This document shows, one piece after another, positions 11,213-56,775 of a DNA stretch of 64,000 bases. The position numbers and the translations under genes are program-made. The stretch spans positions 53,754,001 to 53,818,000 of the forward strand of contig OZ241831.1 of the NCBI GenBank assembly GCA_965202585.1, given 5' to 3'. The notes beneath the pieces were generated by a model. The model searched no databases and was not told where the DNA came from. It saw only the letters and a list, made by a program, of their open reading frames with translations. The DNA comes from Thalia democratica. Taxonomy: Eukaryota. Positions within the stretch are counted from its first letter, which is position 1. Every line of letters begins with the position of its first letter.

Positions 11213-12889
11213 TTATTCATCTAGCTCAAATATAATTAAGTATGCTGGAAATGAATCACAAAGATGATTTACGCATCCATAATTTTCATATCCAAACAAT
11301 CCTTCTCTTGTAACACTATTTCTGCTATCTTTTAAAATTGTTTTGTCTTTACTGACACGCTCATTATAGTTTTCTTCTGAACAGACAACAAACACGAATG
11401 ACAACAATTTTACTGTATTATCTACTTCGCAGTAACTAGCATTGTTATTACTTTCACTTTCTACGTCGGTAGTAAGAAACTTTATGTTTTTACGATAACC
11501 GTTTTTCAAAATATCTTCTACTTGATCCTTTCTAATTCCGTTAAGGTAAAGATACTTGTGTTGTAATTTAACAACTTCAAGTTTGTCAGTAGGGTTTATT
11601 CTGAACAACTGTCTTACTTTCAACATGTTTACATTATTGAATGATCGCGAAATAAACTTGTAATCATCATTCTCTTTCTGCAGAAGTTCTGTACTAAATT
11701 TTCTTTTTTCGTCATCTTTCACATTAAAAATGCTAGTAAATTGAAAGGAAAGTTGTTTAATTAAATAATTGATAGAATTTTCTAAGCTAGAAGTCATACG
11801 CTTTATTTTTTTAAGGTGATTTCTAGTTATTTCTTTCTCTAGCTCTTCTGCTATCGTCGTTTGGGAAAATTTAGAAACTTTATTTTGAGTATTACTATCT
11901 TTGTTTGTTCTTCGATTTATGACAGAACCAGCAACATTTATTGTATAACTCCTTATTTTTAAACAACTATAAAGTATTTTATTGACTATATCATCTATAT
12001 CAGTTTTTTCTTCCATTTCAATTATATAAGCAGGTACTACTAAACTATGATGGGCCAATATTATGTTTTTATGATCAATGCTTTGAAATGAACCATTCAA
12101 AATTTTTCTGTTTTGACTATCAAACAAGTCTAAAGGAGACTTTTCAGTTCTAAATGGTCGATTTAAACCAATTTCAAATGGTTGCATTTTTCGAGTTTTA
12201 TATAAATTTACTGACGGCTCCTTATTCTGATAATCTTCAAAAGATGTTTTATTTTCAAATAGACTATCTTGTTTACATAGCTTAGGATGTGGTACACTAT
12301 TAACAAAAAAGTATCTAAACTTTTTAATGAATTTTTCTTCTGTTGCAAAACACATACCGTAATTATATGCATAACTAAAGCTGTTAGTAAGATACACTCC
12401 AGGACCATAAGATCCTTTTTGAGACGGATTAAATCCTGACTTTAAAATTCCTTCTACGTTTGGTGCTTTTGTTCCATGAAGAAAAAGTATCTGATTAGAA
12501 TCATTCGAGTCTGTTGAATTTTTTTCATTTGAGACAACTTTGTATATTCTTAAACTGTTGATGTTTTTTCTTATGTCTAGCTGATATCTAGAGTATTCCG
12601 TAGTAGAATTATCGTTAATATTAATTGAACCTTTAATGAGTTCGTAGTCAGTATCATTGGTTTTCAACAGCTCAAGTTTGTATTTAAAACCAGGAAGAAC
12701 AGACTTTTTGAAATTTGCAACATTGTATTCACATAACTTTTTAGCTTTTTCAAACACATTTTCGTTTTCGTAATCATCTTTTTCTTTGTTTATTTGTTCT
12801 TCCTTTTTCTGAACAATATCTTGTAAAAAACTTTTACAGTTAGGGTGACTTTTTGAAAATTCTTCCACTTTGTGTTTGATGAATTCCAT
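11213..12889 (-). CDS. 558-aa protein with a PARP-like ADP-ribosyltransferase domain plus a degenerate second ART domain (paralogue 1)
   Basis: Uninterrupted ORF. Motifs FLHGTKAPNVEGILKSGF, GSYGPGVYLTNS and VVPAYII. The second repeat has YLYLNGIRKDQVEDILKNGY ... FPAYLIIFEL. Confidence 0.9.
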   Translation of the reverse strand: MEFIKHKVEEFSKSHPNCKSFLQDIVQKKEEQINKEKDDYENENVFEKAKKLCEYNVANFKKSVLPGFKYKLELLKTNDTDYELIKGSININDNSTTEYSRYQLDIRKNINSLRIYKVVSNEKNSTDSNDSNQILFLHGTKAPNVEGILKSGFNPSQKGSYGPGVYLTNSFSYAYNYGMCFATEEKFIKKFRYFFVNSVPHPKLCKQDSLFENKTSFEDYQNKEPSVNLYKTRKMQPFEIGLNRPFRTEKSPLDLFDSQNRKILNGSFQSIDHKNIILAHHSLVVPAYIIEMEEKTDIDDIVNKILYSCLKIRSYTINVAGSVINRRTNKDSNTQNKVSKFSQTTIAEELEKEITRNHLKKIKRMTSSLENSINYLIKQLSFQFTSIFNVKDDEKRKFSTELLQKENDDYKFISRSFNNVNMLKVRQLFRINPTDKLEVVKLQHKYLYLNGIRKDQVEDILKNGYRKNIKFLTTDVESESNNNASYCEVDNTVKLLSFVFVVCSEENYNERVSKDKTILKDSRNSVTREGLFGYENYGCVNHLCDSFPAYLIIFELDE

Positions 12890-13395
12890 CGTATACTTTG
12901 TTTTATGTATTAAACTACTAAAGTATTACTTAAGTTAGCTCTGGAAATAAATAGAAAAGTTTTGTTTTACAGAAAATAAGTATTTATAACTGGTTTATGA
13001 TTAAGTTTAAAGCAAATGACTGTTGCAGACCCAACAGAGGTGCTGCCATAAATTAGGTGGGTTATGACTGTCTGATACAAGATCTTTGTATCTGAATATT
13101 ATATTTGCAACTAATTTAATTTTAAAAATTAAGTTGCGTTAAAAATTCAATCTACTTAGGTAAATTACAAAAATATGTAACTTAAACATAGTAGTAATAA
13201 ATTTAATCAAAAAAAATGTTTTTTATGGAGATTGATATAAAGAAAGAAATCAATATGAGAATATTAGATTAAAACTAGAAAAAATGAAATAAATTAATAA
13301 CTAATTTTTTGTTTAGTTAAAACTATACAAACATTAAGTTGTGATTAAAAGACAAAAAAATAAAATCAACAAATTTTTACTAATCATATTAGGAA

Positions 13396-13515
13396 TGATC
13401 AGGATATATTGGGTTTGAACAAATTGTTTAGAAGTGATCAGGTTAGAATAAATCGGGTTAGAAAAGATAGGGTTTGAAATAATCAGGTCAGAAATAATTT
13501 ATTAAAAAGTGATCG
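13396..13515. repeat. 15-bp tandem repeat (ATCGGGTTAGAAATA-like), about 7 diverged copies
   Basis: ATCAGGTTAGAATAA / ATCGGGTTAGAAAAG / ATAGGGTTTGAAATA / ATCAGGTCAGAAATA in tandem. Confidence 0.6.
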
Positions 13516-16049
13516 CGAATAGTAATTGATAATTAATTCCAAAAAATACCCTTCGCGATATTTTATTTGAAGAAACTTTCACTTAGGCACCATTCAACTT
13601 TCACGAAGTTTTTAAAGTTCAAACTATATAGGATTCAATATTGCAACTTTTAAATTTTTATTGTATTTAAACTTGTGACATTTATCACTAAACATTGTGA
13701 ACAACTTGAGGCGATGTATGTAAGGTTTAATTGAGCACTAAAACATAAAAAAAATAAAAATAAAACTATAGAAAAGTGATAATAACTACGAAAAATAAAG
13801 TTTTTTACAAAGTAACTTAAAAATAGTTTAAAACTAAATATACCAAAATTCATTGAAATTAGAGAACTATACATTATCTAATGTTATTAATAAATTCTAT
13901 AACTATTATAGTCTCATCATTAAAAAAACATAATTATCCTGTGTCAGCCAGAGCTAAAAAACAAAATTTAAAATATTCTAAGCTGTTCAGAGATTTTTAA
14001 GAAATTCAACATTTTTCTAAGTATTTTTAATGCTTTAAGTTTTGACAAAATTGCAATACATATATTTTTTTCTAGTTTGTAAACCGTTAAGGTTGATTAT
14101 ATATCGGGGTTGTCACTTTTTTTAGCAAAAAACTGAGTATAAAAAGCTAAATAAAGTAAAAAATCTGTCCTTAGTGACTAGAAACTGTCCTTGTGTAGCA
14201 ACCTTGTTAAACGCTAGGATTAAAATAATAATATTTAACTAAATGGTAGTTGTGTTAGAATTCAAATCATCATATAAAATCTCTCACAGTATTTACAAGG
14301 CAATCTTTTGATAAGCTATTATAAGAAAGCAATAATTTAAGTGGTAGTAAGTTTTCAAATTTTAATAATATAATTAGCTGTTACAACTACTATGAAAAAT
14401 AATAAACTGTTAAGATAAAATTAGCTTTGTGAAATATTATAAATAAGCTGTTTGTAATGCAGTATTTTTTTATGGCATTTGTTAACAAGTTTAACAAATA
14501 AATCTATCACAATTAAATCTTTTTCTTGTTAAAAAAACAGCTTGTGTTACCAAAAACTAGTCTTAGTTTTATCAAACTAGCTTGAGTCAGCTTAAGTTAG
14601 TGATAAAAAACAATAACCTTAGTCATGAGAATGTTTTAAAAAGTAAATAAAATGAGCAAAGTTTGAAAAAAATAACAATATTACCTAGTAAAACTGAAAA
14701 AGAAACAAGATAATTTGTTAACAAATTAAATTAACTTTTGAAATAGATTATAAGATTTTAATATGTTATAATGAGTAAGATGCATTTTAAGTGTTTACAC
14801 AATCTAGTAGATTTTTAATATAACTAGTATTATTTCAAAATTAGACAAAACAACTTTAAAAAAAAGTATTAAGCTAAAAAAAAACCACATAACTATTAAA
14901 ATGTTTTAAATAGCTGCATTTTGCAAAAATAATCAAATAAAATTGGATTGACCTGATATATTATTACATTATAATTTAAATTTTTAGTATTAACTTTTTT
15001 TTTGTTATATCATATAGCTAAATATGATTTCTAGAAGTTTGAAATAAATTTCTTTTTTGTATTAACAGACAACTTTAAAAATATTGTAAAATCTATACAA
15101 ATTTTTTTCGAATTTTATTAAAGCTTTAATGTTTACAATAAGGTAAATTTTAAGTAAAAGAAAATAGGCTTTCATAAAATTTTTTAATTTAACTTTTTAA
15201 ACATTACCTTTTGTCTTTGCTTTCCACATAGAAACAGTTTAATTTAAAAAAAATTAAATACATATCTTTCATATGAAAAATTAAACTACTTGAAGCTTAG
15301 TTAAATTGTAAAAAAATGGTAGCAAAGATAATAATGTACATAGCTAGACAAACTTGTAAATATCAATATGGAATCCACTATGGCCTTAAACCATTTATGT
15401 TTGTTCAGATCTTTTTTATGACTTAAGAATTTTTTGTTCTCAGAATTTGTAGTCATCGTTATGATTTATTTTTGAAATTTCATACTTTTTATCAAACTAA
15501 TCGTAAAATGTTTTGATTAAAGTTTTAGGGGAGGGGTCAACGTTGAATATACAAGTTCAACTTGTTTTGTAGAGTTTATCTTAGCTATCAGAAGTTTTGA
15601 ACAACTTAACAAAAGATTTAAGCAATCAAAGTTTGTGAACTCTAAAAGATCCATGTAAATGGAACAAATTAAAAAGTCAGAAAAAAAATTTTTCTGCATT
15701 TTTAAATAATCTTCTTAAATATTTACAGTAGTTATATAATTTAAATACAGGACTTAAACAAGAATAAAAAAATCACACTTTTATTTTAATCAAAAAATAC
15801 TATTTCTTACTAACTATTGAATTCAAAAATGTTAAGTCTTTTAGACAAAAAAAAAGCTTTTTAAAAGTTGAGGTACATGAAAATGAAAGAGATAAAAGAT
15901 TTTCAAGAAATAATAAAAGTGATAGTATCACAATTTTTTTTAATTCTAAAAAGTTTGCACTTAAAGCTTTTGAATAAGAACTAAATTTTACTTTTGAATA
16001 ATTCTTCTGAGGTTTTTAAAAATACCTAAAACTAAACTGACTTTATCTT

Positions 16050-19000
16050 ATAAAAATGAAACTTATCCTAATTCAGCCTGTACTAAAAAAAAATTAAAAT
16101 GTCCTGAGATTATAAAATATCTTTACTTATTTTAAGTGTAAGACAACCCTGAATATTTCGTTAATTTTACTAAAAATAAAGCTACAAAAGCTTATTGATA
16201 AAAACAAATCATAGTTTGGTAATCTACAAATAAAATCTCTAACTAATTCACCAACTTTTAAGCAGTTGATCTGATAAAAACTGCTATTATGTTAAAAAAC
16301 TGATTAGGCCGTGTAAAAAAAAGAGCAAGTTAAAAGAGATTAAATTAACTTTAGTTTGTTTTGTTAATAATGATTTTTTTATATTACATATACAGACATT
16401 GTACATGTACAAAAAGTACATTTTGAGATATAAGTGATCAAAGATGGTGGACTCAAAAGGTTTTTTTTTACAGGAGCAGAATATGAGTTAAAAAAAGAAT
16501 AATTAACTGAAAGTATACCTGCTCGTAATTTTTAAACCCATCTTCTCTAAACTTCTACCACGAGTCTAATTATTTTTTTTTCAGTGTAGAGTTTATTTTT
16601 ATAACAAAAACATCATTTAATTTTTATCTTTTCATCTAGAAAATTTATTTTAAATCATTTCAAATTAAATTATTTAAAGTTTTTAAATAAAAAAAACAAA
16701 AAATGAAGAAAAGATAGATTTTTAGTGAATCTTTAAGTTGACAAGAAAATTTAACTTTATAAAACTTGTGGTCTTTTTTATTGTATTGTAAACTTAAATT
16801 GAAAATAAAAAAATAAATTTTTTGATCCATTAATAGTATAAAATCACACTTAAGATAAAAATTCCTTTAAAGGTTTTTAAAATTACAGGCTTTTGGGTCT
16901 GCTTATTAGTTCAAAATAAAGTTCAAAAATGTGTAAAGTAGTATAACAACATAGCAAAGACACTAGTATTACTAGATTAATGTGTTTTTTAATAAAATCT
17001 TTTGGTGATGATATAAAATGTTTTTAATATGATTGACTTTTTTGTCAAATCAAGATGTAAAAATAGTTTAAAATTCAAGGTTTTTCAATGTTTATAAATA
17101 ACTTTAGTAGCAAATTCCAGATCTTCTTCAGTATTTTTTTAAATTCCATGTACCTAGTCAAAATTATCAAATTTAATTTTTCCAGGATTTCAGGTTTGGT
17201 GGCAACCAAGAACAATAAAAATGTTTTGTAAAGTACAGGGTTGTCAAAGGATCCATGTAAGTTTCTTCCAGGCTTTTTAAAAAAATAAATTTTTTAGTCC
17301 ATTTAAAGAATAAAATCAAACTTTTGATAAAATAATATTAAAAAATATATTCTAGGTTTTTAAAAGTACAGGGTTTTTGGTCTACTTATAGTTATAATTA
17401 AAATTAAAGTTAAAACTGTGTTAAGCTACATAAAAACATTGCAAAGACAATTTAAATATAGTTTAAATGTGTTTTTTGAAATTGAAATTGATGATGATAA
17501 CTTTTTTTTTAGTTATTTTTGGTATGTTAAGATGTAAAAATAGTTTAAAATTCAGATCTTTCAAGGTTTATTAGTAACTTTAGTAGAGAGTCCCAGCTTT
17601 TCTTTTTAATAATTTTCAAATTCCAGGTTTTTCCAGAACTTCAGGTATGGTAGAACCAAGAACAATTTAAAAATTTTGTAAACCTGCTTAAAATGTTTTC
17701 ATATAAAAATAAATTATTAATAATACAATAAAAATTTTTATCCTTCAGAGGCATTATTCCAATTAGATGAAACTTTGTTACTTCACATGTACAAATAGAA
17801 AATATAGGTGTTTTAAAAGTTTTATCAACTTTTTTAGAGATTTCATGTTTAAAAAAAAGTTCTTTAACTAAAAGTTTTTCCAGTTGTTTTTTGCCTAAAT
17901 TGACATACTACAGATTATCCTGGGTTCCTGGTTTTTTTGGCAACCCTGTATAGATATAAAAAATTATATAGATAATAAATAAGTAATTTTACTGCAAAAA
18001 ACAAAACTTAAAGGAATAAAGCAAAACATGACAAAAAGGGATCATTGAAATGATATTGACTATATTTAAACAAAACTGCTTAAATGAACAATAAATTAAA
18101 TTAGTAGATGTAATAATTAGTCTTAATATACAAAAATATAAAATTAGTAAAGACCATATTTTGTTAGACTTTGTTTACATTAATACTATTATTTTAAGCA
18201 CTCTGTTAGATTAAACACATTCATCTATAATTAAGTTTAATTATAAAAATATGCACAATATACTAAGATACTTTATTCATTTAAAAAAATCTTAAAAAGT
18301 AGTGGTCATTAAAATGAATAAAATTATTCTAAAAGTTAAACCTTTTTTCTAAAATGGCATGCATTTAACTTTTAAAATACTCAACAGTTTTTTTCTACCT
18401 TAAACACTTGCAACTGTAGTTGTTGGTTCTAAACTTAAGCACAATAAATACTGTGTGAATAAACATTTATATATTAGCTATCAAAGTTTAAACACATTCA
18501 AAAACTTAAGGTTAGCTGACTGTTATAATGAACTAATCATTGATAATGACAATTTTATTTTCATGGCTGTCTAACTTCTAGTATAAAAAATACAGATTAC
18601 CTTGAAACCATCCTTTATAAACTTTTTATACCTTAATGTATGTAAATATTGTTAATATTGAATTTGACAAAATGGACTAAAACATGCTCTAAATTTTTTA
18701 ATAGAGTTTACTAGTTAATCTTTTTCTAATGATTCAGTAAGTAAAACTCTGAGCAATATTTTTGTACAAAGGTTTATTTATTAATCTGTATAAAAGTTCT
18801 AACATTTATATTAAGTTGAAATAAAAAACTTTTTCTACGCTTTTGTATGGCTTCTAAAGTACCAGAAAAAAAGGAACAAATAAAAAACTATGTTTTTTAA
18901 CATTTTCATTGTAATTTATTTTAAGCTTTCACATAAGTAAACTTTTATAGATAAAAATTTAACAAAATTTACTTAAACAAATTTTAATTTTTTTTCAAAA

Positions 19001-19230
19001 ACTTAAAGCTGTAAAGGTGTTTTTAAGTATTAAGCGTACAAAACTATCAACAATATTTTATAATATTGTATTTTACACTTATATATGCCTTCTAAATTGC
19101 GAATAACAAAAAAACCTAGATAATAAACAAACAATTGTTTCGTTTTACTAAAAAATTATGCTTGAGTAGTTTTTAGCTATTTGCTCAGGGATAATCTGGC
19201 AACCGTATTCTTTTGTAACAGACTTACATA
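16050..19230 (+). repeat. Segmental duplication block, copy 1 (collinear with ~52590-58060)
   Basis: Anchors shared in the same order: 16050/52590, 16930/53220, 17765/54000, 18350/54900+57410, 18670/57725, 19190/58020. Same orientation relative to each ART gene. Confidence 0.75.
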
Positions 19231-20449
19231 AAAACAGAAATAATCATTAAGATATTTAAGAAAATTTTCTGTTTTTTTTTTGATTATTTTTATCTAAGTC
19301 CTATTTTATTGTTTCGACATACATGTATTTAAAAGTGCCGATTTTTTTAAAAATGTGAAAATTGCTCAATTTTGTGAAGCAAACATAAACAATAGGATAT
19401 TTTTCACATAAGAAACACATAAGTAACTAAAAATAAACTGCGAAACAAAATTAGTAACAAATTTAGTCTAATCAAAGAAAAACTATTTAATGATATAAAA
19501 ATAAAGTACTTTCTGAAACAGATAAAGTTAGAAAAAATTGTGTGATTATTAAAATATGATTAATCTTTTGACAAAAGAAATCAGACGTGCACAATTCATT
19601 TACAACTTGACAAAAACTTATACGTTTTTCGCAGTTGTAAATAAAAACAATGTGTATGTGTTTAATTAGAAGTTATAATAAAATATTAAAATCTTCGAAG
19701 TTAGAACTGAAAAATTATTCAATAAGGAAAATTTTAGTTCTTTTATATGAATTAAAAAAATTTATTTTTTAAGTTGTGCAACTTTAGTGATTATAATTTT
19801 TTTTACAGTGTATATAGTTTTATTAGACAAAATACATTTTCTATAATACACTTTTATTTTTGACGTAGTTTTGTCAAAAATAATATAATGCTCTCGGGCT
19901 GAATAACTACAAAACGTGACTATATAATTTGTAATGGTAAAAAGCACTGTGTGAAAGTTAAAAGGCACTCGGCAGTAGCTAGGATTTAAGTTCCTAAATA
20001 AATAACTTAAAATACTATTTACAGATTATTTTTAAACACTAAACACAATGCTAATTAACAATTTTTCTCTATATTACAGTTGAATAGCATTCTTGAACTA
20101 ACTGTTTACACGTCAAATTTCCATATTAAAATATTTTCAAATATTAATCTGTAACATTTGACATTCAACCTTATATTTTAAATTTTTAAACCGTAGTGCT
20201 ATTTAAGTCAGTAAAATAAGAATAAGACTTAAAAGTCGGTCTTACTTGCATATATTTGGTGATATAGCATTAAAAAAAAACTTTTTTTTTATTTTGTTTA
20301 TTTACACCAGGGAACCCTTTTTCAGGTGAACCCCTTTAGAGAGTTAAATAAATCCTCTTTCATTAGATTAACAAAAACCAACCATTAAAAAAAATTAATA
20401 CCTAATTATGCTCTTCATCTGGTACACAAGAATATCTAGTGTAAGTTTT

Positions 20450-20510
20450 AAGCTATGACCTCATGTCCCCCTCACCTTTGGCTCCTTTACTGCTCATGCC
20501 CCAAATAATT
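20450..20510 (-). repeat. Fragment of a dispersed repeat family (also at 45230-45445 + and 60260-60512 -)
   Basis: Shared GGGGC..GAGCAGTAAAGGAGCCA..GGGG..ATGAGGTCATA sequence. Confidence 0.6.
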
Positions 20511-20912
20511 TCTTTTATTGCTGAATTAGTAAATATGTAATTCAAACTGCCGTAGAAATATAAAAGCTAGATAAAACTAGCTTTACATTTTAAGTTTTTA
20601 AAAAGTTAGAAAGAAACTAATTGTCAAAACTAAAAAGTAATAAATTTTTCATAAGTCTGTATAAACTTTACTAAATCATAATTATATAAATATGTCAGAG
20701 AAAACAAAAAACTAACTATGGTTTGATTAAAAATAAATTAAACATAAAAATACTTCTCAAAGTTTACTTTAACAAATGTCACTGATTGAAAACTATTATA
20801 GATTTAATGACAACCTAAATTGCTATGTTTTACAGATTGAAAGTTTAAAAGTTATAAACTTCTATCATCCACTAGACATTATTTATTTTGCAAATGTTGC
20901 TTTCCATCAGTC

Positions 20913-20985
20913 GTCTCCGTGGCGCAATGGATAGCGCGCTCGACTTCTAATCAAGAGGTTCCGGGTTCGAGTCCCGGCGGAGATG
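20913..20985 (+). tRNA. tRNA-Arg-TCT: tRNA-Arg, anticodon UCU, intronless
   Basis: Cloverleaf: acceptor stem GTCTCCG/CGGAGAT, D stem GCGC/GCGC, anticodon loop CTTCTAA, T loop GGTTCGAGTCC. One C-A mismatch in the anticodon stem. No encoded CCA. Confidence 0.95.
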
Positions 20986-20986
20986 C

Positions 20987-20990
20987 TTTT
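20987..20990 (+). terminator. RNA polymerase III terminator (T run)
   Basis: TTTT immediately downstream of the tRNA. Confidence 0.7.
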
Positions 20991-26450: not shown

Positions 26451-26616
26451 ATGGGAGGAAAGTCGTCTTGTTGTATCGAGCCTGAAGAGATGAGATCCCT
26501 GACTGAGGAGACGGGATTTTCTTCCAGGAAATTAAACGAGTTGTACTTCAGGTTCCAATCCCTGGACAACGAAGGAAAGGGATACTTGAACCGGGAAGAC
26601 CTCATGAAAGTTGAAG
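26451..26616 (+). CDS. CHP: Calcineurin B homologous protein, exon 1 of 3
   Basis: MGGKSSCCIEPEEMRSLTEETGFSSRKLNELYFRFQSLDNEGKGYLNREDLMKVE aligns to the CHP N-terminus (ETGFS...LY.RF.SLD). GT donor at 26617, phase 1. Confidence 0.93.
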
Positions 26617-36470: not shown

Positions 36471-36536
36471 ACTTGTTTACAAAAAGTAATGAAGAAAAAG
36501 TTGGTTTAGTGTTCTTTTTTATTTCGTACTTTAAAC

Positions 36537-39500: not shown

Positions 39501-41115
39501 TCTTCGAGTTAAAAAACTATCCTGACTCTTTAACTTTGAAATTTTTAAAAAACATCATATATAAATATTCAGTATAAATAAAGTTTAAAAAACAACTCAA
39601 GTTAATCATCAAAATTGGAATTTTAAAAAAAAATGTTAAAACTACAACAAAGAAATTTCATTTAATGAAATAAACAATATTAGAACAAGATTCAAAAAGC
39701 AAATTATCCTGGGAATTGTAAAATATTTATACTGTCCTGAGTTGCACTAAGTGTAGGACTCTGTATTAGTTACAATAAAATTAGCCTTGGTCATCTTGAG
39801 TTTAATAAAGAAAAGAGAAAGCCAAAGCTCAAAAGTGGCAGTATACTTAAAGTAATATTTTGATAAATGACTAAATATATTTTTCATGCTTCAAAAAAAA
39901 ATCATAAATGTATTCAAAGATTCTACACAAGTACCAAAACTAGACTACCTTTTACAAGAAAAAAAAATGCTTTTCAAGACTTTATTTCTAATATAAAAAT
40001 TACTTAGGCTGAGCAACCTTCAATCATAAGACAGATACAACATATTTTGTTAAACCAACAGATCAAAATAGCTAGTAAATAAAATAATTAAGAGAATAAA
40101 TTTTTCAACTTTTAAAGTCAATAAATTTAAGTAACAAGTTGTTTAATAAAAAGCATACCTAGCTAGCCTGAGATTTACAAAAAAAAGAAAAGTTTTAGCC
40201 TTCCTGAGATTTTCAAAAACATTTATAAAATTCAAACTATCCTCAGTGTGTAGTAACTCAATGTCAATTTGAGCCTATAGTTTCTTTACATTTTATATGT
40301 ACTATTCAATTATGGATAGGTTAATAAATTAAATATAAAAATAAATTTAAAGGAATAATATTTACTCAAATTGTGTTATTCAAAATTTAAAGCTGTTACT
40401 TAAAACTTGTTCTTTACTACTGTTATGCATCTATTTAGAGAGAATTATTAATATACTTTAACTATTTTTATCTTAATTTAAGTATTTTTAATTGAACATC
40501 AATTCTTTTATTTTCCTGTAAGTATAAAAATTATCTCTAAATTTTCATCATTATTGAACTATTAATATAATTATCATGTGAATATTCTAATAGAAATTAT
40601 TGTTTAGTTTTAAAAGTAGGTAATATTAATAGTTTATAAAAGGAACTTTCTTCACTAAGAAAAATATTGTAATCTACTAATACTATAAGTAAAATGAAAA
40701 TACTAACCTTTTAAATATAATCATGGTCGTAGCTGGATGAAAGCTTCCTCCACATCAGTCAACTGAATTCAAAAGATCTTAGATCATTCTCTCTATTCTT
40801 TCAGATGCAAACTGCAGCCTCAATGTTTATATAAAGAATGATATGTGATTTTTAAAACCAAAATAGATCATGAGAGTAAAATGGCCAATAAACTAAAAGC
40901 TAAACTAAACACCAGGGCTGGATTTAACTTAAATATTTGAGTATGTTGCTTAAACTAAATAAATATAATAATAATAAGACAAAAAGTAAAGTTTTGTGTA
41001 ATCTCAAAATTTCGTGCACCCCTAAATGACTTTTGTGTACCCTAAAAGTTTCGTGCACCCCAAAAAAAGTTTCGTGTACACTAGTGTGCACCAGTGTACA
41101 CCGTGCCGACCACTG
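36537..41115. mobile_element. 4579-bp non-autonomous hAT element
   Basis: Perfect 14-bp TIR CAGTGGTCGGCACG / CGTGCCGACCACTG. Perfect 8-bp TSD CTTTAAAC (36529-36536, 41116-41123). TTTCGTGCACCCC-type subterminal repeats at both ends. No ORF of 60 aa or more inside. Confidence 0.9.
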
Positions 41116-41343
41116 CTTTAAACGATAATAAATAAATAATATACAAAAATGTTACTGTAATAAAGTGCCAAAAATATAAATAATTAAATCTACCTACTTG
41201 ATAAAATAAGCAGATTTAGAAAAAATAAATGTTAATCTATTTTGATAATCGGCACAAAATTCTATTTTTAGCTACCTTAGTAAAATACCTCTGTTAAATT
41301 AATAGCTTGGTTATAAAAATATTTACAAAAATAAAATAAGATA

Positions 41344-43020
41344 CTACTCATAATTGCATTTGTAAAGTCTAGTTGTTCTTTTCCTTCGAAAGTTTGAAAA
41401 ATTATGTTGTTTTCTTGAAACTTCTAAGCTTTCAACATCAGCAGCTATTTCATTCAAAATATCTTTAGAAACATTAGAATCAATTCTAAGATACTCCTGT
41501 ACTTTATTTAACTTACCATTTATAACAAGTTTAGTTACTTTTTCAATCGAATTACATCTTGCCTTTTGAACTTCAGAAACAACAGTATTGTTTGAATCAA
41601 CAGAAATCGGCTTACTTTTTTGTGCAGTTTGCTCAGATAGATTTTCAACATTACATTTAGTAGCTTTAGGCTGTTCATAAAAACTTTCTCTTTTTGTATT
41701 TTGCTTAGGGACAATACTCTCAATTTTATTTCCTTTATTTTCAATTTTTTCTGATAGGAAATCTTGGTTTGATACTTTTGTTTTTGCTTTAAAAGCTGGA
41801 AATTTTTTGTTTCTACTTCTGTTTATCTTATTTTCGTCTAAAAACTTATTTTTTGTTTCTAAATTTTTAGAGTTTCATAAAGCTCCTTAAATTAAGTATT
41901 CTCTGATTGATCAATAACACAAACTTCAATTTGGACAATTTTACTTTTGATAGATTTCTTAAGGAAGCTGTCAATAATATTAATAACATGATCACTGCTA
42001 CAATTCAGTAATTTTTCCAAATTTCTACCTAAATGAGGCTTCAAATCACTTAATTCCAACCTAATTGTCCTTTTACTCTCTGGTACAGATATTGTTTTAT
42101 AGAAAATTTCTTTACCTAAGATAAAAACCGTAATTTTAAAAAACTGCATACATTTCTAATTCCTTATAATATTTACAATATTTGGGATTTATTTAGAAAT
42201 ATGAACAAGTTTAACTTCATAACTGATTATACTAATATAGTTAACTGATTATCATTAGTTAAATTCTAAACAAAACATTATTTTTAGTTTTAGAACTACT
42301 AATCTACTTTTAAGTTTAGATCTACAAAGATAAAATCTGTTGTTATATTTTCTATAGTTTATTCGGAAAATAACATGGTGTTAAGTTTATAAAACTGTAA
42401 CAAAAAATTTTTAAACTTACTTTTTCATAAACAAACAAAGCATAAAATTTTATTTTAGCATTATTATGTGGTAAAGTTAAGTAAACAAGATAAATTAAGC
42501 AACTTTTTGTAGACTCAAGCTAAAATTTAAAAGCTATATGAGTTTTATGAATGATACCAGAACTTATTAAAACTTAGCAAAAATATATTAATATTATAGA
42601 AACACACTTACCTAGGATATCGTTTATCCAATTCTCTTTTAAGTTATTCAAACAATTAAGGTACTGGAATTTGCTGTATTTGATATTGAGACCCAAATAC
42701 TTCCAATTTTCATTTTAAAAATAATTTTCAGTGTCATTTAAACTTTTAAGTCCGGCTTCAACGTACAAGTAAGTTCGAGAACTGAATTCGTAAAACTCCC
42801 TAATTTTTAACATTTCTTGGAGAATCAAGTCTTTAAAAGCTGTTTTTTCTTTTTTAACAACATAAGCATAAGGGTTTACAAAAGTTTTTCCTCTACTGAA
42901 AAATTCAGTTTGAACTTTTTTTAAGAAATTGTTTCTATTTAGTTTTATGTCTACAATGCTATCTTTTCTTACTAAAAAGTTTCCTTTAGGTCCGATTAGA
43001 ATAAATTGGCTGTCGTTCAT
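41344..43020 (-). pseudogene. Two-exon gene of unknown function with nonsense codons and a frameshift
   Basis: Exon A 43020-42612 has an in-frame TAA at 42715-17 and donor G|GTAAGT. The intron is 42611-42116. Exon B starts at 42115 after TTTTTATCTTAG in matching phase 1. A second TAA is at 41892, then a 1-nt shift leads into a 176-codon stop-free frame (41874-41347). Confidence 0.65.
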
Positions 43021-43294
43021 AATGTTTAGAAATATAAAGTTCTAGCTTTAACCAAGTTAAGATTATGTATTTATACAAGTTCTAAATTTTAATTATTGAA
43101 TACCTTATTATCAATAACTGTTGATTTTGCTTTATTCTTGTAATTTATGTTAACAAAAAAGTTTAATTTACAACAACTGCTAATTACAGTGCATTTTATG
43201 ACTTTAACTTAAACTTAAACTTACATTAGATGCAACTGCTTTATTATTGCAATACTTATACTATTACTAATTCTAGTTATTTTAATTTAATTTT

Positions 43295-43395
43295 TGTATA
43301 GTTATCGATAACCGAAAAGTTTTTTCGTACACCAGGTCCTTGGACCAAATTTTTGAGCGCTTTTTTTTTCGTTCAATGAACAATATACTTTTAAG
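43295..43395 (+). repeat. Copy of a hairpin-bearing dispersed repeat family
   Basis: TCGATAACCG...CCAGGTCCTTGGACCAAATTTTTGAGCG matches 44400-44490, 37140-37235 (-) and partly 32545-32600. Confidence 0.6.
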
Positions 43396-44289
43396 CAGGC
43401 AAAAAGTTTTGTTGTACACTCTGTAGCAGAATTGGGTGTTATCTACAATCTTGGGGTGTTACAAGTTAAGTTTAGCAAAAGCAGAGTTTAAGTATTTTTC
43501 ACCTTATTTTCAAAAACCAGGTCAGGTCGATTTAATAATGAAAATAATTGCATTAGACTTACAAAACTCTTTTATGGAAATACATTCTAAATTGTATAAG
43601 GTTCATTTAGAAGGTTGTGGCTTTAAATGTTCAAAAGTTTAATCGTTTTTATATTTTGATTAAAATTTGTACTCTCAGGGAAGTTGTTTAATTTAATTAT
43701 GTCAAAACCCTAAAAGTACTTTTGATAAAAACGTTTGCTTAATATAAAAAGTAAATAAGCTTCATTACAACTATCAGTAATATAGATTGAATACTTAGTA
43801 CAGCAGATATTATTAGATAAAATTAATTATAGATTTTAACAAAACAAAATTCTTTTTTAAATTCTAAGTAGCTGTTTAATTTCAAAAAGCTAATAAAACT
43901 AGTTTTATTTAAAGTTTCATTAATTACCTTGAAAACATAAAACCTCATTTAGAACATAAAAGGTTTTTTAATGATAAAATAAAACGTAAGCTTTTTTTAT
44001 AGTTTTTTGTTTTGCTTTATAGTTTTACTTTTTTTTCTATTGATTTCTTATAAAGTATAGAAAGTTCTAAATTTATAATTTTATAATTTTTGTTTTATGA
44101 ATGCTTTTTAACAGTTGTTATTATGTATTATCTAGTTATTTATCTTTATAAAACTTCTTAATTTTTTACTTTTAAGTTCATTAAAAATATTATAAGACGG
44201 AAAATGGTTGTTCTTTATTTACTAGTCTAGAAATTATAATATAAGATTTTATAAAACTACATTACTAGTATATAAAGAAGTTAGTTCGT

Positions 44290-44495
44290 ATAGTTGGTTA
44301 TTCAAAAGCAAGTTTTGACTCAAACGTTGGACTACATACATGTCCTGGGCAAGACCGGTATCCATAACTCGGTGTGTGACTCGATAACCGAGTTATGGAT
44401 ACCATTATGGAAACCGAGTTATGATATTTTCGTGAACCATGTCCTAGGACCAAACATTTTGAGCGATATTATTTTTGTCTTCCAATAAACAATAT
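44290..44495. repeat. Quasi-palindromic copy of the same family with a perfect 17-bp hairpin
   Basis: GGTATCCATAACTCGGT (44357-44373) pairs with ACCGAGTTATGGATACC (44387-44403), 13-nt spacer. Confidence 0.7.
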
Positions 44496-45229
44496 ATTAC
44501 TACTAGTTTTTTTCTCGAACCTACAATAAGCAATTTATCAACTTTTTTGACATTTGTACTGGTTAGAATTGACATTATCTTTATGCCTACTTTATTGTAA
44601 GTAGTGCAATTAGATTATATAATAAAATTAAGTCTCTCTAAAGATTTTAAAAAGCTAAACGAATAGATCTATTAATCCAAATTGGTAATATTTAAATTTG
44701 TAAAAAAAAACGCGTAGCAACGAAAAACTTTTCTTTTGTAATTTTAAAAGTTTCTTTTAGTGATTTATAGTAACAAAAACTTTATAACGAAAGGAGCGTG
44801 AAGTAGCTTTGTAACTATTTCATGAAAGTAACTTACGTAAACTTATACACAAGTAAACCTACATTGTATTTAGAGCTTTAATTTTACTAGTCTTTGAACT
44901 AAAACGCATACTTTTTTAAAAAAATTAAGTTTTAATTTTAAGTTTAGCTTTTTTTGTTATTTCGATGCATGAAAATACAGAACTAATAGTACTCACTTTG
45001 TAACCGAACAAATGATAAACAATGTTTTTTCTTTAATAAATATTTCACTTTTTTTAAAACTTTCTAAACTTTCTGAAGCCTAAAGATATTTTGAAACTTA
45101 GGTCAGACTTATAGCAAATTTCAAAAATACATGTTTATACTTTAAAAAAAGTTTAGATTAAAGAAACTCTTTAAACTAAAGTTTCCTAAAGTGGGCTAAG
45201 TGGCCTCGCCCTCTTGGAAGCTTATGGGG

Positions 45230-45445
45230 CCATAGGCAGCAAAGAGGCACAAGGGGATATAAAGTTATAATTTGAAACTTACACTAGATATCCTGGAGTT
45301 GATGATGAAGAGCAAAACAAAGGTCTCAAGCGTTATTAAATGGTAGTTTTCTGAGAAATCTTGTTAGAGGGAGCAATGATTCAGAGCTTATTTTTTATTT
45401 CTTTAAAGGAGCCTTTTGAGAAAAAAAATTGCGAACTCCTGTTTT
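45230..45445 (+). mobile_element. hAT-like MITE fragment
   Basis: Ends in AAAATTGCGAACTCCTG, resembling a hAT terminus. The interior matches 60260-60512 (-) and 20450-20510 (-). Confidence 0.5.
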
Positions 45446-46739
45446 AAACGCTCTAGACAGATACTTTGCTAACAACAATATTTTAGTATGACACAAAAAT
45501 TAATTCATCAAATATCTTAAAAATAAGTTATCTTATTTTTACATATACCATTATTAACACTCCTTTTGCTAAATATTCAGTTTTTCTAAAAAATACAGGT
45601 CTTATTTAAAAACAAATGCTTTATGTTCGAAACTTTGTATCAAAAACTTTTTAATAAACAAAGGTTATAAAATGCTTTCTCTATGCTTGCTGTGACTTTT
45701 CTATACAAGAAGTTGAATTTAAAAATATGAGTTCTGCATGCGTATATTCATTTTAAATCAAGTTTAATATTAAGCTATTTATGAGTTTTTTTTATAGTTG
45801 ACATTCTATAAACTACTTGTAATTTGAAGATGTGAAACATTGCTTTGTTGTACTAATTATTATCAAGTTAGTAGGCAAAAACAAGTAATTTTTAAGACAT
45901 AGGTTTACTTTACATTAGTTTCTTAAGTACAGTTTAAAACAATTCGTCGTATTTCACCAGTTTTCTTTTTTTATGATATAATAACCTCAGCCTCAAACTC
46001 TATCCCTTGCAACGATGAACGTTTTCTGGGGAAAAGCGAGTTTTTTTTTTTTTTCGTTTGATCCTGTGTTTCGATTACTATTACTTATCAAGGTAAAAAG
46101 GTTATACATATTTTTGAAAACATCTTTTTATTGAGGTAACGCAAGTTTATTCAAAATAATAAAAAAATAGTTTTCGAGATGTGTAATAAATTTATGGTTA
46201 ACTAAATAACTGGTTTTCAAGGTGATGTGCTAGGTTACATTTAGTCTCTCTAAACCAAATTAAATCATACTGTATAAACCTATTTCTACATCATATTGTT
46301 TTTAAAACATATCATTCTTTTTTACCAAACTCCTTAAAAATTGATAATTGGAACATTTAAGATTTACTTTTTGAAGTAAATGTGGTATTTAGTTTTTTTG
46401 CTACTGAACCGTTATATCACAAAAATAATTCAACGTTAGTCAGATCTTTCAAAAATAAACATCAAAAGTATGTATGCTAATGCAGATTGTGTTAGTTCAA
46501 CAGCACACTCAAAGAACCTGAGTAATAATAATATCATAGGTCTAAGCTTCTTTAAAATATAAAGAAGTTTTTCATCGTATAAGTTTAAAACAATTTCAAA
46601 GGTTTAGAATTAGTAGTTTTAAAAATTATATGAATTAAGTTAAATAAGCTGAAAATAATTAGCTTAGAAATAAATCATCTTAAATAGCGTTCTATATTTG
46701 CTTTTATAAGTTACATTTCACATTCATAAAACTTATAAA

Positions 46740-47960
46740 CATCATTGAGATTTTTTACAATGCTTTGCATCAGCAGTAACTCCAACCACCCGAAGATAAT
46801 CAAGAAAAACCTACCCAAAATAAATGTATAAATAGACTGTCTGCAGACCTAAGAACCTTTGATAATGCAAAGCATAGCTATCAAGTTGCTCTGCTCCAAT
46901 CCAACTTCAAACACAAACTTGAATATGAAATAAACCAACCCTGTTGACAAAAAGAAACGTAAACGAACAAGAAAAATTAGGTACTTTAATCCTCCATACT
47001 GCCAATCAGTTAAAACTAACTTTGGGAGAAAATTCTTAGATCTAATTGACAAACACTTTAAAATTGAGAGCATTAAAAAGATCTTCAACAGAAGCAACTG
47101 CAAAATATCGTACTGTTGTATGGAAAATGTCAAATCATTAGTAAGTGGCCGCAATAAGACGATACTAAGTAAACTGAATCATAAGAACGACCAAGAGGAT
47201 AAAACATGCAACTGCAGCGACAAAGACTCCTGCCCCTTAAGTGGCGAATGCTTACAAGAGAATGTTGTATATAAGACGACAATTACTAGTCAGTTCGAAA
47301 TGAAGGAATACATAGGATCCACGGAAAGCAAATTCAAAAAGAGATGATATGCATACATTAGTGAAACTAAGAATGAAAATAACAAGGGATAACTTTCTAT
47401 GTACATTTGGAGATTAAAAAAAAAAACACATGATACGATTTAAGGTGAAGCATCATGCATAATATTAGAGAAATAAAAAGTATAAGTAAAGTCTGTAAGA
47501 CTTGCATTCTGGAAAAAATAGAAATAGCGCTTGCTAACAAGAAACAAATTTTAAACAAAAGACAAGAGCTCTTCTACACCTGCCCGCACTTTAGGAATTT
47601 TTTTTTTAAACTTAGCGTATTTCATTCTTTTATCACTTATTTTTGTTATTGCTCGTACCCTTATTTATTAAACGCCATTTTGTTTTGTGTTGTTATAAGC
47701 TAAATCTAAATCTGTATAGAACAAATCAGCTACTGTAAGTATAAATACTATTTAAAATTTATTAATTTTTTTCATTATAATTTTTTTTTAGTTTTGTTAA
47801 TTAGTTATCTAGTAATAACACTATATTTTTTAATTTAACTTAAATTTAATTATAATTTCTGCATTATTATAAATATTTAGTTATCCATCGTCTTATTTTT
47901 ATTATATTTTGCAGGCCTGAAGATTCCTTAGGGGTGAAACATTGTTGCCTTAGTGTAAAC
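46740..47960 (+). mobile_element. 5'-truncated, frameshifted Penelope-like retroelement (RT thumb, linker, GIY-YIG endonuclease, 3' region)
   Basis: SNSNHPKII; YFNPPYCQSVKTNFGRKFLDLIDKHF; CNC..KDSCPLSGECLQENVVYK; YIGSTESKFKKR; CKTCILEK; LNKRQELFYTCPH. These are typical PLE motifs. Confidence 0.9.
47913..47950 (+). ncRNA. Degenerate minimal hammerhead ribozyme at the Penelope 3' end
   Basis: AGGC-CTGAAGA-TTCCTTAGGGGT-GAAA-CATTG-TT-GCCT. Stem I AGGC/GCCT, intact core, weak stem II, short stem III, GUU site. Confidence 0.6.
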
Positions 47961-48202
47961 AAATGAATTTAATATTAACTTTGTCTCTGAAATTAAAATA
48001 GTTGATACCTTTTGTGCCCAAGGAATAGTCTTTGTATCTACCTAATGTAAATTTTATATTAATAAGTATTTATGATTTGAAAAGACATTCTATGTACATA
48101 TAGATAATAGTCATTTTAAATAATGAGCTAAATAGAGTTAGAACTTTATCTAGTGTGACTAAAACTAATATATTATTCAAATGTCATTATAACCAAAACT
48201 TA

Positions 48203-48265
48203 GGCCCGCGAAGACTTTAGAAACTTTAAATTTTGTCCGCGAGCAACAACTGCCTGCCGACCTCT
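48203..48265. mobile_element. Short hAT (Charlie-like) terminal remnant
   Basis: GGCCCGCGA...GTCCGCGAG...TGCCGACCTCT resembles hAT right ends. Confidence 0.35.
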
Positions 48266-48426
48266 TCTATAGGTAATAAGTTTAAAGACTTCATAGTTTA
48301 ATTTACACACTTTTTTTAGTAATAAGTATTATGGATAAGCAAAGTTACGTTGAATAGGTTATTATACTTTAAAGCTAATAAAAATGATATACTCTAAATG
48401 TTAATTAATTTAGTACTATCTCAAGA

Positions 48427-48965
48427 GGGTAGCTGTCAAATTTACGCGAGCGTACAAAATTGCACAAGAGCACAAAATTGAACTGAGATACATTTGCACG
48501 AAGACTTTTTTGCAAGATGGGATAAAATTGCACTAAGAAGAAATTGCACGAAGATACTTTTGCACAAAGCATCACTTTGCACTAGCAGACAATTTTGCAC
48601 GGGTTAAATTTTTATTTATTGAATTTTTTTATCTTTTAATTTTTTATTTTTTATCACTGATACCCCTTACCCTCGGTCGGTAAATTATTTGTCTTTTATG
48701 ACTTTTTTTTTGTTCTGATGTATTTTTTCTATCCTTGTAACCCTTAATCCTTACCCTCGGTCAGTAGTTAAATTATTTATTTTTTCTTTTTTTTTTTTAT
48801 TTATATTTATTTTTTTTACTTTCACAGCTACCTCTAACCCTTACCCTCGGTCGGTAGCTCTTTTTTTTTGATTATTTTTTGTTTATTATGATATATTTAT
48901 TAGTTACTTTTTTATTTTAAATTTTACTATCACTGATCTTCTTACCTTTACCCATGGTCAGTAGT
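48427..48965. mobile_element. One-ended copy of the TTGCACG-array element
   Basis: Starts GGGTAGCTGTCAAATTT, has TTGCACG-like arrays and CCTTACCCTCGGTCGGT repeats. Reverse complement of 35930-36327. Confidence 0.7.
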
Positions 48966-49549
48966 TTTTTCTTTTTTTTATAAGTTTTTATTAGTTTTTT
49001 ATTTTGTTTTTTAATCTATTGACAACTAAAAAAAATTTTCATATTGAAGAATTGTTTATCTTTTTATTTTAAATTGTAATAACTTGTTAGTTATAAACTA
49101 TAACATTACAATTAAGTAAAATTTTGTTAATATTATATTTGAGCATTTTAAAAAAACAATATATTTCTTACAAGACTTTAATATTTCTTACAAGTTCTAA
49201 CATATAAAAATATTAAGTAAACTTATATCTATAAAACATTATAAGTTTTAGAACTTTATCTATTAAAAACGTTCGAAGCGTTTATTTAAAAAATTCTTTT
49301 AAACAGAATTTTTTTAAATGGCAAAAGTAAACAAACCGAAATAAGGATTAAGATTAATACCTAAATAGAAAAAGTAAAGTCAATTAAAAATTTTTTACTA
49401 TCATGAACTCTAAAACTTGAGGAACAATTTATTTTACGTTTGACAAAAATTCGGAACAAAAATATTTAAAAATAGTCTTTTACTAAGAATATTTATAACT
49501 ATTTTAACTTACCATACAAAACAAAAAATTAAGTATATTTTTTACGTTA

Positions 49550-51250
49550 CTACTCATCTAACTCAAAAATAATGAGGTAAGCTGGAATTAAATCGAAACA
49601 ACTTCTTACAACTCCATCATAAAATATTCCTTCTCTTGTTACATTTTTCTTACTATCCTCGATAGCTAGCTTGTTTTTAGAGATTGACTCGTCATAGTTA
49701 CTTTCTGAACTAACAACAAATACAAAAGACAACCTTTTTACTGTATTATCAACTTCACAATAATTACTACGAAAAGCTAATGTTGCGAAACTTAAATTTG
49801 TTGTAGTATGATTTAGTTCTCTGGCAAATTTATCTAGGCCGTTTTGATCATTAGGATAACCATTTGTCAAAACATATTTTACTTCGTCCGCTTTAACTCC
49901 GTTTAGATAAAGGTACTTTTGTTTGCAGTTGAGAACTTCATTTTTATCAGTAGGGTTTACTCTGAACAGTTGTCTAATTTTTCGAATATTTTCTGCGTTT
50001 TCATTATCAAATGAACGTAAAATAAACTTGTAATCATCATTATCTTTATGTAGAAGTTCTGTACTAAATTTTCTTTTTTCGTCATGTTTTACAACAAAAA
50101 TGCTGCTTAATTTAAAAGAAACTTGTTCCATAATTTTATTAGTGTCATTTTCTAACGTTGTGGTTAGACAATCTATTTTCGCATGATAGTTTCTGTTTAT
50201 TTCAATCTTTAGCTCTTCAGCTATCATTGAAAAAGAAAATTCAGATATTTCATTTTGAAGATTATTTTCTTTGTGTCTTTTCCGATCCATCGCAGACTTA
50301 AAAAATTTTTTTGAATACCTTTGAATTTTCAAGCTACTATAAAGTATTCGTTCAACTATGTCGTATACATTAGTTTTTTCTTCAATTTCAATTAAATAAG
50401 CAGGCACTACTAAATCATGATGAGCTAACGTTATGCTTCCTTGACCAGTTGTTTGAAATGAACCTTTTAAAAGTTTCCTTTTATTACTATCATACACGTC
50501 TAGCGGAATTTCTTCATTCATAGTAGGTATCAAAAATCTACTTTGAAATGTTTTCACCAATGGTTCTTTACTTAAATAATCTTCAAATGATAATTTTTTC
50601 AGATATCGACTACGTTTTAGAAATACCTCAGGATTAGTAGGTACACTGTTTACAAAAAAGTATTTGAAATTTTTTATCTTTTTTTCTTCTGTAGCACAAC
50701 ACATACCGTAACTATTTGCATAACTAAAACTATTAGTTAGATACACTCCAGGTCCATAAGATCCCTTTTCGGATGGAATAAACCCTGACTTTAATATTCC
50801 TTCAACATTTTGGGCTTTAGTTCCGTGTAGCAAAAGTATCTGATTAGTATCGCTTGACTTTGTTAAAATATTTTCGTTTGATACTACTCTGTATATTTTT
50901 AAACTTTCAGTCTTAGGTTTTATATTTAGTTGATTGCAAGAATAATTTCTAGTAGAATTAACATTAATTATTGCTGAATTTTTAAAGAGTTGGTAGTCCG
51001 GATCACTGGTTTTTAATAGCTCAAGTTTGTATTTAAAACCAGGAAGAACTGATTTTTTGAAGTTTGCAACATCATATTCACATAATGCTTTAGCTTTTTC
51101 GAACACCGTTCCTTTTTCGTGATTATTTTTTTCTTCATTTATTTCCTCTTCCGCCTTCCTAACAATACTTTGTAGAAAATTTCTACAGTCAGGGTGATTT
51201 TTTGAAAACTCTTCTACTTTGTTTTTAATTAACTGCATTGTTAATTCCAT
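49550..51250 (-). CDS. 566-aa protein with a PARP-like ADP-ribosyltransferase domain plus a degenerate second ART domain (paralogue 2)
   Basis: Uninterrupted ORF. Motifs LLHGTKAQNVEGILKSGF, GSYGPGVYLTNS and LVVPAYLI. Second repeat YLYLNGVKADEVKYVLTNGY ... IPAYLIIFEL. Collinear with 11213-12889. Confidence 0.9.
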   Translation of the reverse strand: MELTMQLIKNKVEEFSKNHPDCRNFLQSIVRKAEEEINEEKNNHEKGTVFEKAKALCEYDVANFKKSVLPGFKYKLELLKTSDPDYQLFKNSAIINVNSTRNYSCNQLNIKPKTESLKIYRVVSNENILTKSSDTNQILLLHGTKAQNVEGILKSGFIPSEKGSYGPGVYLTNSFSYANSYGMCCATEEKKIKNFKYFFVNSVPTNPEVFLKRSRYLKKLSFEDYLSKEPLVKTFQSRFLIPTMNEEIPLDVYDSNKRKLLKGSFQTTGQGSITLAHHDLVVPAYLIEIEEKTNVYDIVERILYSSLKIQRYSKKFFKSAMDRKRHKENNLQNEISEFSFSMIAEELKIEINRNYHAKIDCLTTTLENDTNKIMEQVSFKLSSIFVVKHDEKRKFSTELLHKDNDDYKFILRSFDNENAENIRKIRQLFRVNPTDKNEVLNCKQKYLYLNGVKADEVKYVLTNGYPNDQNGLDKFARELNHTTTNLSFATLAFRSNYCEVDNTVKRLSFVFVVSSESNYDESISKNKLAIEDSKKNVTREGIFYDGVVRSCFDLIPAYLIIFELDE

Positions 51251-56731: not shown

Positions 56732-56775
56732 TGTATATATCACAGTTTCACTATGGAAATTTTCTTTGCCACAGA

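Follow-up and report, generated by a model that had tools for sequence, protein, structure and literature searches.

The question raised by this locus is what is encoded by two long, uninterrupted open reading frames (ORFs) in a 64-kb stretch of the Thalia democratica genome. The stretch, hereafter the window, corresponds to C7:53.754-53.818 Mb (contig OZ241831.1) in a genome of 802 Mb and 1833 contigs. A preliminary description, made from the letters of the DNA, had located the ORFs at 11213-12889 and 49550-51250 and presented them as a pair of genes, each joining a PARP-type ADP-ribosyltransferase (ART) domain to a second, ART-like repeat. Both ORFs exist exactly there, on the minus strand, as do all parts of the two genes given below. 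Gene 1 (11213..12889) encodes 558 amino acids (aa) and gene 2 (49550..51250) encodes 566 aa; each is intact and intron-free and has the same order of parts: helices at the N-terminus, then a first module (ART1) that is joined to a second (ART2) by a helical linker. Full-length alignment of the two proteins gives 58% identity. With ~8.6% of random codons expected to be stops (an estimate from the composition of the window, which has 25% GC), the probability that a frame of 558 codons stays open by chance is ~1e-22; the 64 kb hold only three ORFs of at least 150 aa. The answer that we favor, and consider probable, is that these genes are functional and belong to a very large, intron-free family, specific to its lineage, in which ART1 is a mono-ADP-ribosyltransferase and ART2 a pseudo-enzyme.

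The first module is a PARP catalytic domain in which the signature for binding nicotinamide adenine dinucleotide (NAD+) is kept. In gene 1, ART1 spans residues 61-296 (12002..12709) and is matched by the Pfam PARP model (PF00644) at E 7.6e-12; the corresponding match in gene 2 (50372..51061, with boundaries taken from the family alignment) has E 5.7e-12. The scores for the two genes, 45.6 and 46.0 bits, compare with a cut-off of 26.7, and the model is above threshold in the N-terminal half only. In a full-length AlphaFold model of the gene 1 protein (predicted local distance difference test, pLDDT, 82; predicted template-modelling score, pTM, 0.73), residues 55-295 superimpose on PARP3 with Z 15.6-15.9 over 191 residues (root-mean-square deviation 3.4, 19% identity), followed by PARP1 (Z 15.1), PARP2 (14.5), PARP4 (13.4), PARP10 (12.6, 22% identity), PARP15 (11.5) and PARP16 (11.2). 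The assignment of this half to the PARP-type ARTs in the preliminary description is borne out both by Pfam (E ~1e-11) and by the fit to PARP3. An ART1 profile searched against PDB sequences retrieved chains of PARP1, PARP15, PARP3, PARP4 and PARP14 at E ~1e-6, with no subfamily favored. A Pfam scan of both proteins at E<=1 found no WWE, macro, WGR, BRCT, ankyrin or zinc-finger domain, as had been stated earlier, and neither PARP_reg (PF02877) nor WGR precedes the ART of either protein at this threshold. With accessory domains not found and no subfamily preferred, the earlier view that the architecture is not that of any canonical PARP1-16 stands.

Residue tallies were made on an alignment of 41 family members and are given in gene 1 numbering. 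In ART1, His138 (codon 12476-12478) is kept in 40 of the 41 members, Gly139 and the run Gly164-Val165-Tyr166 (Tyr166 codon 12392-12394) in all, and Tyr177 in 35; Thr140 is also kept, and both the Gly-x-Gly-Val-Tyr loop and the Tyr-x10-Tyr motif are present. The equivalent residues of gene 2 are His142 (codon 50825-50827) and Tyr170 (codon 50741-50743). Between the two tyrosines of gene 1 lies Ala174, eight residues after the first (Tyr+8), where canonical PARPs have Ser.

The preliminary description had held that domain 1 retains the His and Tyr of the triad and lacks the Glu, whose place, 13 residues before the Tyr of the PAY motif, is taken by Asn in one gene and Ser in the other. His138 and Tyr166 are indeed present, and no Asp or Glu stands at positions -12 to -14 from the PAY Tyr, which read K274/N275/I276 in gene 1 (I276 codon 12062-12064) and G271/S272/I273 in gene 2. 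Asn and Ser do occupy -13, in a register that is ungapped against PARP1, but the third residue of the triad may be the Ile found at -12 in both genes. In single-module relatives (see below), a conserved Asp-Glu occupies -13/-12 ('DEFVAD...PRYLI'), and its Glu aligns to Ile276 of gene 1 and Ile273 of gene 2. The -12 column of the 41 members holds Ile in 30, Thr in 4, Glu in 3 and Asp in 1, and the -13 column is never acidic; Glu at -12 occurs in the deeper-branching ocean homologues P0016, P0018 and P0020. Judged from these alignments, the ART1 triad is H-Y-I or H-Y-N/S, depending on the register, and the acid is missing either way in both genes. Among ARTD/PARP proteins, H-Y-[I/L/Y] enzymes without the Glu (PARP10, 14, 15 and others) are active mono-ADP-ribosyltransferases.

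The second module had been described as a duplicate of the first on account of the repeats visible in the protein (in gene 1, the repeat openers start at residues 69 and 397, and PAY lies at 286-288 and 548-550). When the halves of the family alignment are compared as profiles with hhalign, they match (probability 99.2%, E 2.8e-19, 170 columns, 23% identity); the internal duplication is real and old. ART2 covers residues 386-558 of gene 1 (11216..11734), and the linker plus ART2 of gene 2 lies at 49553..50371 (boundaries from the family alignment). Pfam returned no match for the ART2 of 27 members, and the best match of an ART2 profile among PDB sequences was PARP3 at only E 0.076; the module is recognizable only by internal profile comparison and by structure. 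For the latter, the C-terminal half was folded alone from a 27-sequence alignment with gene 2 as row 2 (pLDDT 77). All top-ranked matches shown by Foldseek for this model were PARP catalytic domains (E 1e-6 to 1e-5). In an independent search of representative structures with VIA-align, every one of the 17 best matches was a PARP-type ART (Z 11.6 to 7.4), and unrelated structures reached Z 6.5 or less, a value of 4.2 also being given for the next unrelated match; the PARP-type matches include PARP3 (Z 11.6), PARP1 (11.4), PARP2 (11.2), PARP16 (10.6), PARP10 (10.4) and PARP13 (10.0), as well as the TASOR pseudo-PARP (8.4), RCD1 (8.1) and SRO1 (7.4). The predicted fold of the C-terminal half is therefore of the PARP type, in keeping with its earlier description as ART-like.

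In sequence, ART2 is a degenerate copy of the PARP module. The column of the catalytic His holds Asn in 24 of the 41 members, including both window genes (Asn450 in each; codon 11540-11542 in gene 1 and 49901-49903 in gene 2), His in 6 and other residues in 11. The Gly-x-Gly-x-Tyr loop is gone in all 41, and no acid is conserved ahead of the last strand; the substitution of His by Asn and the missing GxY motif reported for domain 2 are thus both confirmed. The module has invariant residues of its own, namely Leu461, Gly464, Ser497-Phe-Val-Phe, Asp521-Ser-Arg, Pro548 and Tyr550, the last three forming the conserved D521-S522-R523 and P548-A-Y550 of gene 1 in the family alignment.

The remaining parts of the protein are helical. 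Residues 1-60 of gene 1 (12710..12889) form three helices (pLDDT 85-96) that match no Pfam family, and the linker (residues 297-385, 11735..12001) is disordered at ~319-338 (pLDDT <50). Matches to generic helical bundles span residues 13-381 of the gene 1 model at Z <=7.9, and the model seems to pack the N-terminal helices together with the long linker helix in a single bundle. The similarity of the N-terminal helices to the linker alone is not significant (E 0.054), and the whole-unit alignment reaches only ~35 residues upstream of each ART.

Genome-wide searches with protein queries, from which all copy numbers given here are lower bounds, place the two genes in a far larger family. With gene 1 as the query, at least 78 full-length, intron-free matches were found, the weakest at E 1e-152, and ~70 of the 78 lie in a 3.4-Mb array at C7:51.08-54.50 Mb. 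Those at C7 52.78-54.50 Mb are all on the minus strand and irregularly spaced, 8-140 kb apart. No internal stop interrupts 52 of the 78, and genuine internal stops or frameshifts were verified in five copies. A divergent ocean homologue used as the query added ~49 two-module genes, whose ORFs measure 541-684 aa and which form clusters on C1 (notably at 92.76-92.99 Mb), C2, C5, C6, C8, C9 and C10 and elsewhere on C7. The two-module family therefore has at least ~125 copies in the genome, about a third of them broken. A single-module ocean protein gave, in addition, at least 150 genomic matches of ~200-280 aa in scattered clusters, for example at C7:56.18-56.54 Mb, C1:105.7-106.2 Mb and C4:28.6-29.5 Mb. 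Some of these single-module matches are embedded in far larger reading frames (up to 1536 aa), a hint of additional fusion architectures. The earlier description as a pair holds in so far as the window has two intact genes, to which tblastn with both proteins added no further copy or fragment within the window, but these are neighbors within an array of ~70; that just two are seen follows from where the window happens to lie.

The relationships among copies point to duplication on several time scales. In a tree of the family, gene 1 branches early within the C7 clade, together with its closest paralogue (L004, 96% identical, at a distance of 516 kb), and gene 2 falls within a young clade of seven members. 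Ocean-metagenome sequences nest among the genomic copies, which implies that the subfamilies predate Thalia democratica. Gene 2 (L024) has a near-identical copy, L028, ~0.9 Mb away, with a synonymous divergence (dS) of 0.006 and flanks that are 98-99% identical; its neighbor past the window end, L025, is separated from L026 by a dS of 0.025. The pairs L024/L025 and L028/L026 mirror each other at C7 53.80-53.82 Mb and 52.90-52.91 Mb, which indicates a recent duplication of a multi-gene block, or possibly an assembly duplicate. The 500 bp upstream of gene 2 are ~72% identical to those of many paralogues, roughly the neutral expectation for their dS, and the flanks of gene 1 align with those of L004 only.

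Pairwise ratios of nonsynonymous to synonymous divergence (dN/dS) were calculated by the Nei-Gojobori method for 24 genomic paralogues, and sliding-window values for 14 representatives. The 24 paralogues have a median dS of 0.51, a median dN of 0.23 and a dN/dS of 0.35-0.65. The sliding-window analysis gave 0.45 overall and its lowest value, 0.11, at residues 136-150, which hold the His-Gly-Thr (HGT) motif and the following helix. Residues 151-180 gave 0.24-0.26, the surface loops at 91-105, 196-255, 466-480 and 526-540 gave 0.55-0.78, and the linker at 316-330, which overlaps the disordered stretch 319-338, reached 1.5. The family is thus under moderate purifying selection centered on the NAD+ site, with fast-evolving loops. 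The claim of selection on the ORFs finds support in an overall dN/dS of ~0.45, well below 1. By module, the ratio is ~0.45 for ART1 and ~0.5 for ART2. Because the two are similar, ART2 is a maintained pseudo-PARP and not a decaying tail. Taken together with the fraction of pseudogenes, this pattern of selection is one of birth and death.

The relatives traced outside this genome come from metagenomes. Word-index protein searches with the full-length protein, a family profile and an ART1 profile returned only unnamed ENA proteins, and every traced contig of these matches belongs to a metagenome assembly, mostly from Tara Oceans. On the Tara and other metagenomic DNA contigs, the homologue consists of one exon, and the DNA is AT-rich (25-30% GC; 38% in one case). 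On one 6.3-kb Tara contig (L002:1101-2785), the homologue is divided between two neighboring ORFs (416 and 142 aa, 558 aa in total) and is probably a copy broken once in an ocean relative. An exhaustive HMMER search of 1.84 billion proteins with the ART1 profile gave 938 matches at E<=1e-3, of which 216 reach 1e-10 and 64 reach 1e-30; the top 150 comprise two-module proteins, single-module proteins (210-265 aa) and fragments. Among these 150, 20 of the nearest single-module relatives were checked, and none has a name or an accession. Atlas language-model look-alikes were generic PARP clusters only. From these sequence searches, the two-module family is so far seen only in the AT-rich genome of Thalia democratica and in ocean metagenomes.

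Several known systems share one or other feature of the family. The catalytic fragment of PARP1/2/3, which couples a helical regulatory domain to an ART, gives the best structural matches of both modules, and a shape search of the Atlas aligns residues 1-330 with helical-domain-plus-ART proteins at template-modelling (TM) scores of 0.33-0.37. Unlike that fragment, the family has no PARP_reg or WGR Pfam match and no Glu, its N-terminal helices are far shorter, and the TM scores stay below 0.5. The mono-ART PARPs (PARP10, PARP14, PARP15, PARP16 and others) likewise combine an ART fold with a retained His and Tyr and a replaced Glu (by Ile, if the -12 register applies). However, the family lacks their macro, WWE, RRM and zinc-finger domains, adds a pseudo-ART and has Ala at the equivalent of PARP1 Ser904, and these PARPs score structurally below PARP1-4 against the gene 1 model. 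ART2 resembles the pseudo-PARPs (the C-terminal domain of PARP13/ZAP, TASOR and plant RCD1/SRO1) in having a PARP fold without the NAD+-binding residues; here, in contrast, it stands in one polypeptide with a seemingly competent PARP module, whose ancient duplicate it is. An inactive ART copy beside an active one is also known from the bacterial binary toxins VIP2, iota Ia and C2I, in which the ART fold is duplicated into a catalytic copy and an inactive adaptor. These toxins are ARTs of the R-S-E (cholera-toxin-like) class, and their inactive copy is N-terminal, whereas that of the present family is C-terminal. No binary-toxin ART appeared among the structural matches of Z >=5, and the resemblance, by analogy, is one of convergence in principle, not of kinship.

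A further parallel may be offered by the Gig2 genes of fish and amphibians, which encode small, virus- and interferon-induced PARP-like proteins (PMC3617106). These genes have undergone lineage-specific tandem expansions, some of their proteins contain two or four tandem units, and a few marine-metagenome matches have been reported for them (PMC3617106). Both families thus consist of a PARP-like unit free of accessory domains that has been expanded in tandem in a particular lineage. Inspection by eye of the Gig2 supplement (PMC3617106) also found features shared with ART1, namely HGT, a spacing of 13 residues from GF to the Tyr of GVY, Ala at Tyr+8 and Tyr at Tyr+11. Gig2 units are ~130-170 aa long and end in a Gig2-specific conserved part (PMC3617106). 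A text search of the supplement (PMC3617106) for PAYLI, PAYLV and AHHD found none of them, and the endings, which were compared unaligned, look different; the LAHH...PAYLI ending belongs to the Thalia democratica family. In addition, the tandem units of Gig2 are described as highly similar (PMC3617106), whereas here the second unit is degenerate. The name Gig2 does not occur among the 20 nearest relatives that were checked. On the present sequence comparison, kinship with Gig2 is a reasonable lead, still unproven.

The following scheme would account for these observations. An ancient internal duplication of a PARP module gave rise to ART2, which has since degenerated but keeps the fold. ART1 would bind NAD+ and, like the H-Y-[I/L/Y] PARPs, mono-ADP-ribosylate its targets, and ART2 would serve as a pseudo-enzyme, whether scaffold, regulator or target-recognition module. 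Tandem and segmental duplication drive the growth and decay of the family, on which purifying selection is moderate. As no signal peptide is evident by eye, the protein is probably intracellular (cytosolic). A role in genetic conflict, such as defense against viruses or parasites, is plausible but unproven, being suggested only by the size of the family, its tandem turnover, its fast loops and the analogy with Gig2. Every testable part of the interpretation in the preliminary description held; the activity of ART1 and the immune role are predictions. Several points weigh against this scheme. The overall dN/dS of 0.45 is fairly relaxed, and the pseudogenes, a third of all copies, suggest that the loss of any one copy may be tolerated. 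Which residue stands in place of the Glu is not fixed, the register being uncertain by one position. PARP1 Ser904 contacts nicotinamide; its equivalent in the family is Ala in 40 of the 41 members, which could weaken NAD+ binding. Finally, the case for an immune role is one of analogy only.

The lack of an acid in the ART1 of both genes, the Ala just mentioned and the clear degeneration of ART2 also favor a different reading, in which both modules are catalytically dead and the protein is purely a scaffold or a reader of NAD+ or ADP-ribose, as in PARP13/ZAP, TASOR and RCD1/SRO. Pseudo-PARPs are moreover among the structural matches (PARP13 at Z 10.0-11.6, TASOR at 8.4-10.0 and RCD1 at 8.1-10.2). 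However, the His-Gly-Thr, Gly-Val-Tyr and Tyr-x10-Tyr motifs hardly vary, if at all, and constraint on the gene is strongest there (dN/dS 0.11), as an occupied NAD+ site predicts, and the activity of H-Y-I/L PARPs as mono-ARTs without the Glu is established; we therefore regard a wholly dead protein as the less likely, if serious, option. Still less likely is that ART1 is mainly an NAD+ glycohydrolase that depletes NAD+ in the manner of abortive infection and modifies no target. An NAD+-binding motif kept without the acceptor-activating Glu would suit such an enzyme, as would, by analogy only, the frequency of NAD+-depleting effectors in conflict systems; yet no feature specific to NADases was found, and the structural neighbors are all transferases or pseudo-transferases.

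Two further readings concern the origin of the genes. Intron-free genes in hundreds of copies and in repeat-rich, gene-poor surroundings could be carried by a mobile element or an integrated virus, with a copy number that reflects transposition and not a host function. Neither gene, however, is flanked by terminal inverted repeats or long terminal repeats, the copies at 52.78-54.50 Mb share one orientation at their irregular spacing of 8-140 kb, flank homology falls with coding divergence as in segmental duplication, and dN/dS is below 1; a scan of viral contigs, made with two peptide patterns only, found no relative. Mobile cargo is accordingly very improbable. Plain orthology to a canonical PARP (PARP1-16) is hardly credible. 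Such orthology would account for the detected PARP catalytic domain and for PARP3 and PARP1 as the best structural matches, but identity to any solved PARP is 13-22%, several subfamilies are matched equally weakly (E ~1e-6), accessory domains are missing, the two-ART architecture is absent from canonical PARPs, and the 20 relatives checked of the nearest 150 among 1.84 billion proteins are unnamed metagenomic proteins. A mono-ADP-ribosyltransferase joined to a pseudo-enzyme thus remains the reading that we prefer.

Apart from the two genes, the sole recognized gene of the window is an intron-free tRNA-Arg (anticodon TCT) at 20913-20986 on the plus strand, between gene 1 and gene 2 (Rfam tRNA, 63.9 bits). 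Pfam matched no family in the five other window ORFs of at least 90 aa. A 190-aa ORF at 62059-62631 on the plus strand, in the GC-richer window end (30-34% GC), has no Pfam match. The arms of an inverted repeat at 8091-9159 measure 265 nt each (8091-8355 and 8895-9159), with 85% complementarity and a separation of 539 nt; the repeat, within which a smaller hairpin is nested, may be a foldback element or one resembling a miniature inverted-repeat transposable element (MITE). Local tandem duplications occur at 16806-17619, with a period of ~480 bp, and at 54915-57405, with a period of ~780-850 bp and short arrays of a CCTGACTTTT-like motif inside.

PARP-family mono-ARTs are recurrent in host-virus conflict, and what is known of this is almost all vertebrate. 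A bolder proposal, which we advance tentatively and would not expect to hold in full, is that the several hundred PARP-like genes form a repertoire of innate defense by ADP-ribosylation, related to Gig2 and older than it. It would consist of single-module proteins, with the acid kept, and two-module proteins (H-Y-I plus a pseudo-ART); its diversifying modules, for target recognition or as decoys, would be the pseudo-ART and the variable loops. With more than 100 two-module copies and at least 150 single-module matches in a marine eukaryote, the family would show massive diversification of PARPs beyond the interferon systems of vertebrates, and it may give the Gig2 genes of fish a deeper evolutionary context. 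Since the closest relatives checked are all unnamed, ocean metagenomes hold an ADP-ribosylation gene family that is unannotated. The presence in one chain of a competent-looking PARP and its own degenerate duplicate also offers a natural system for studying pseudo-PARP function.

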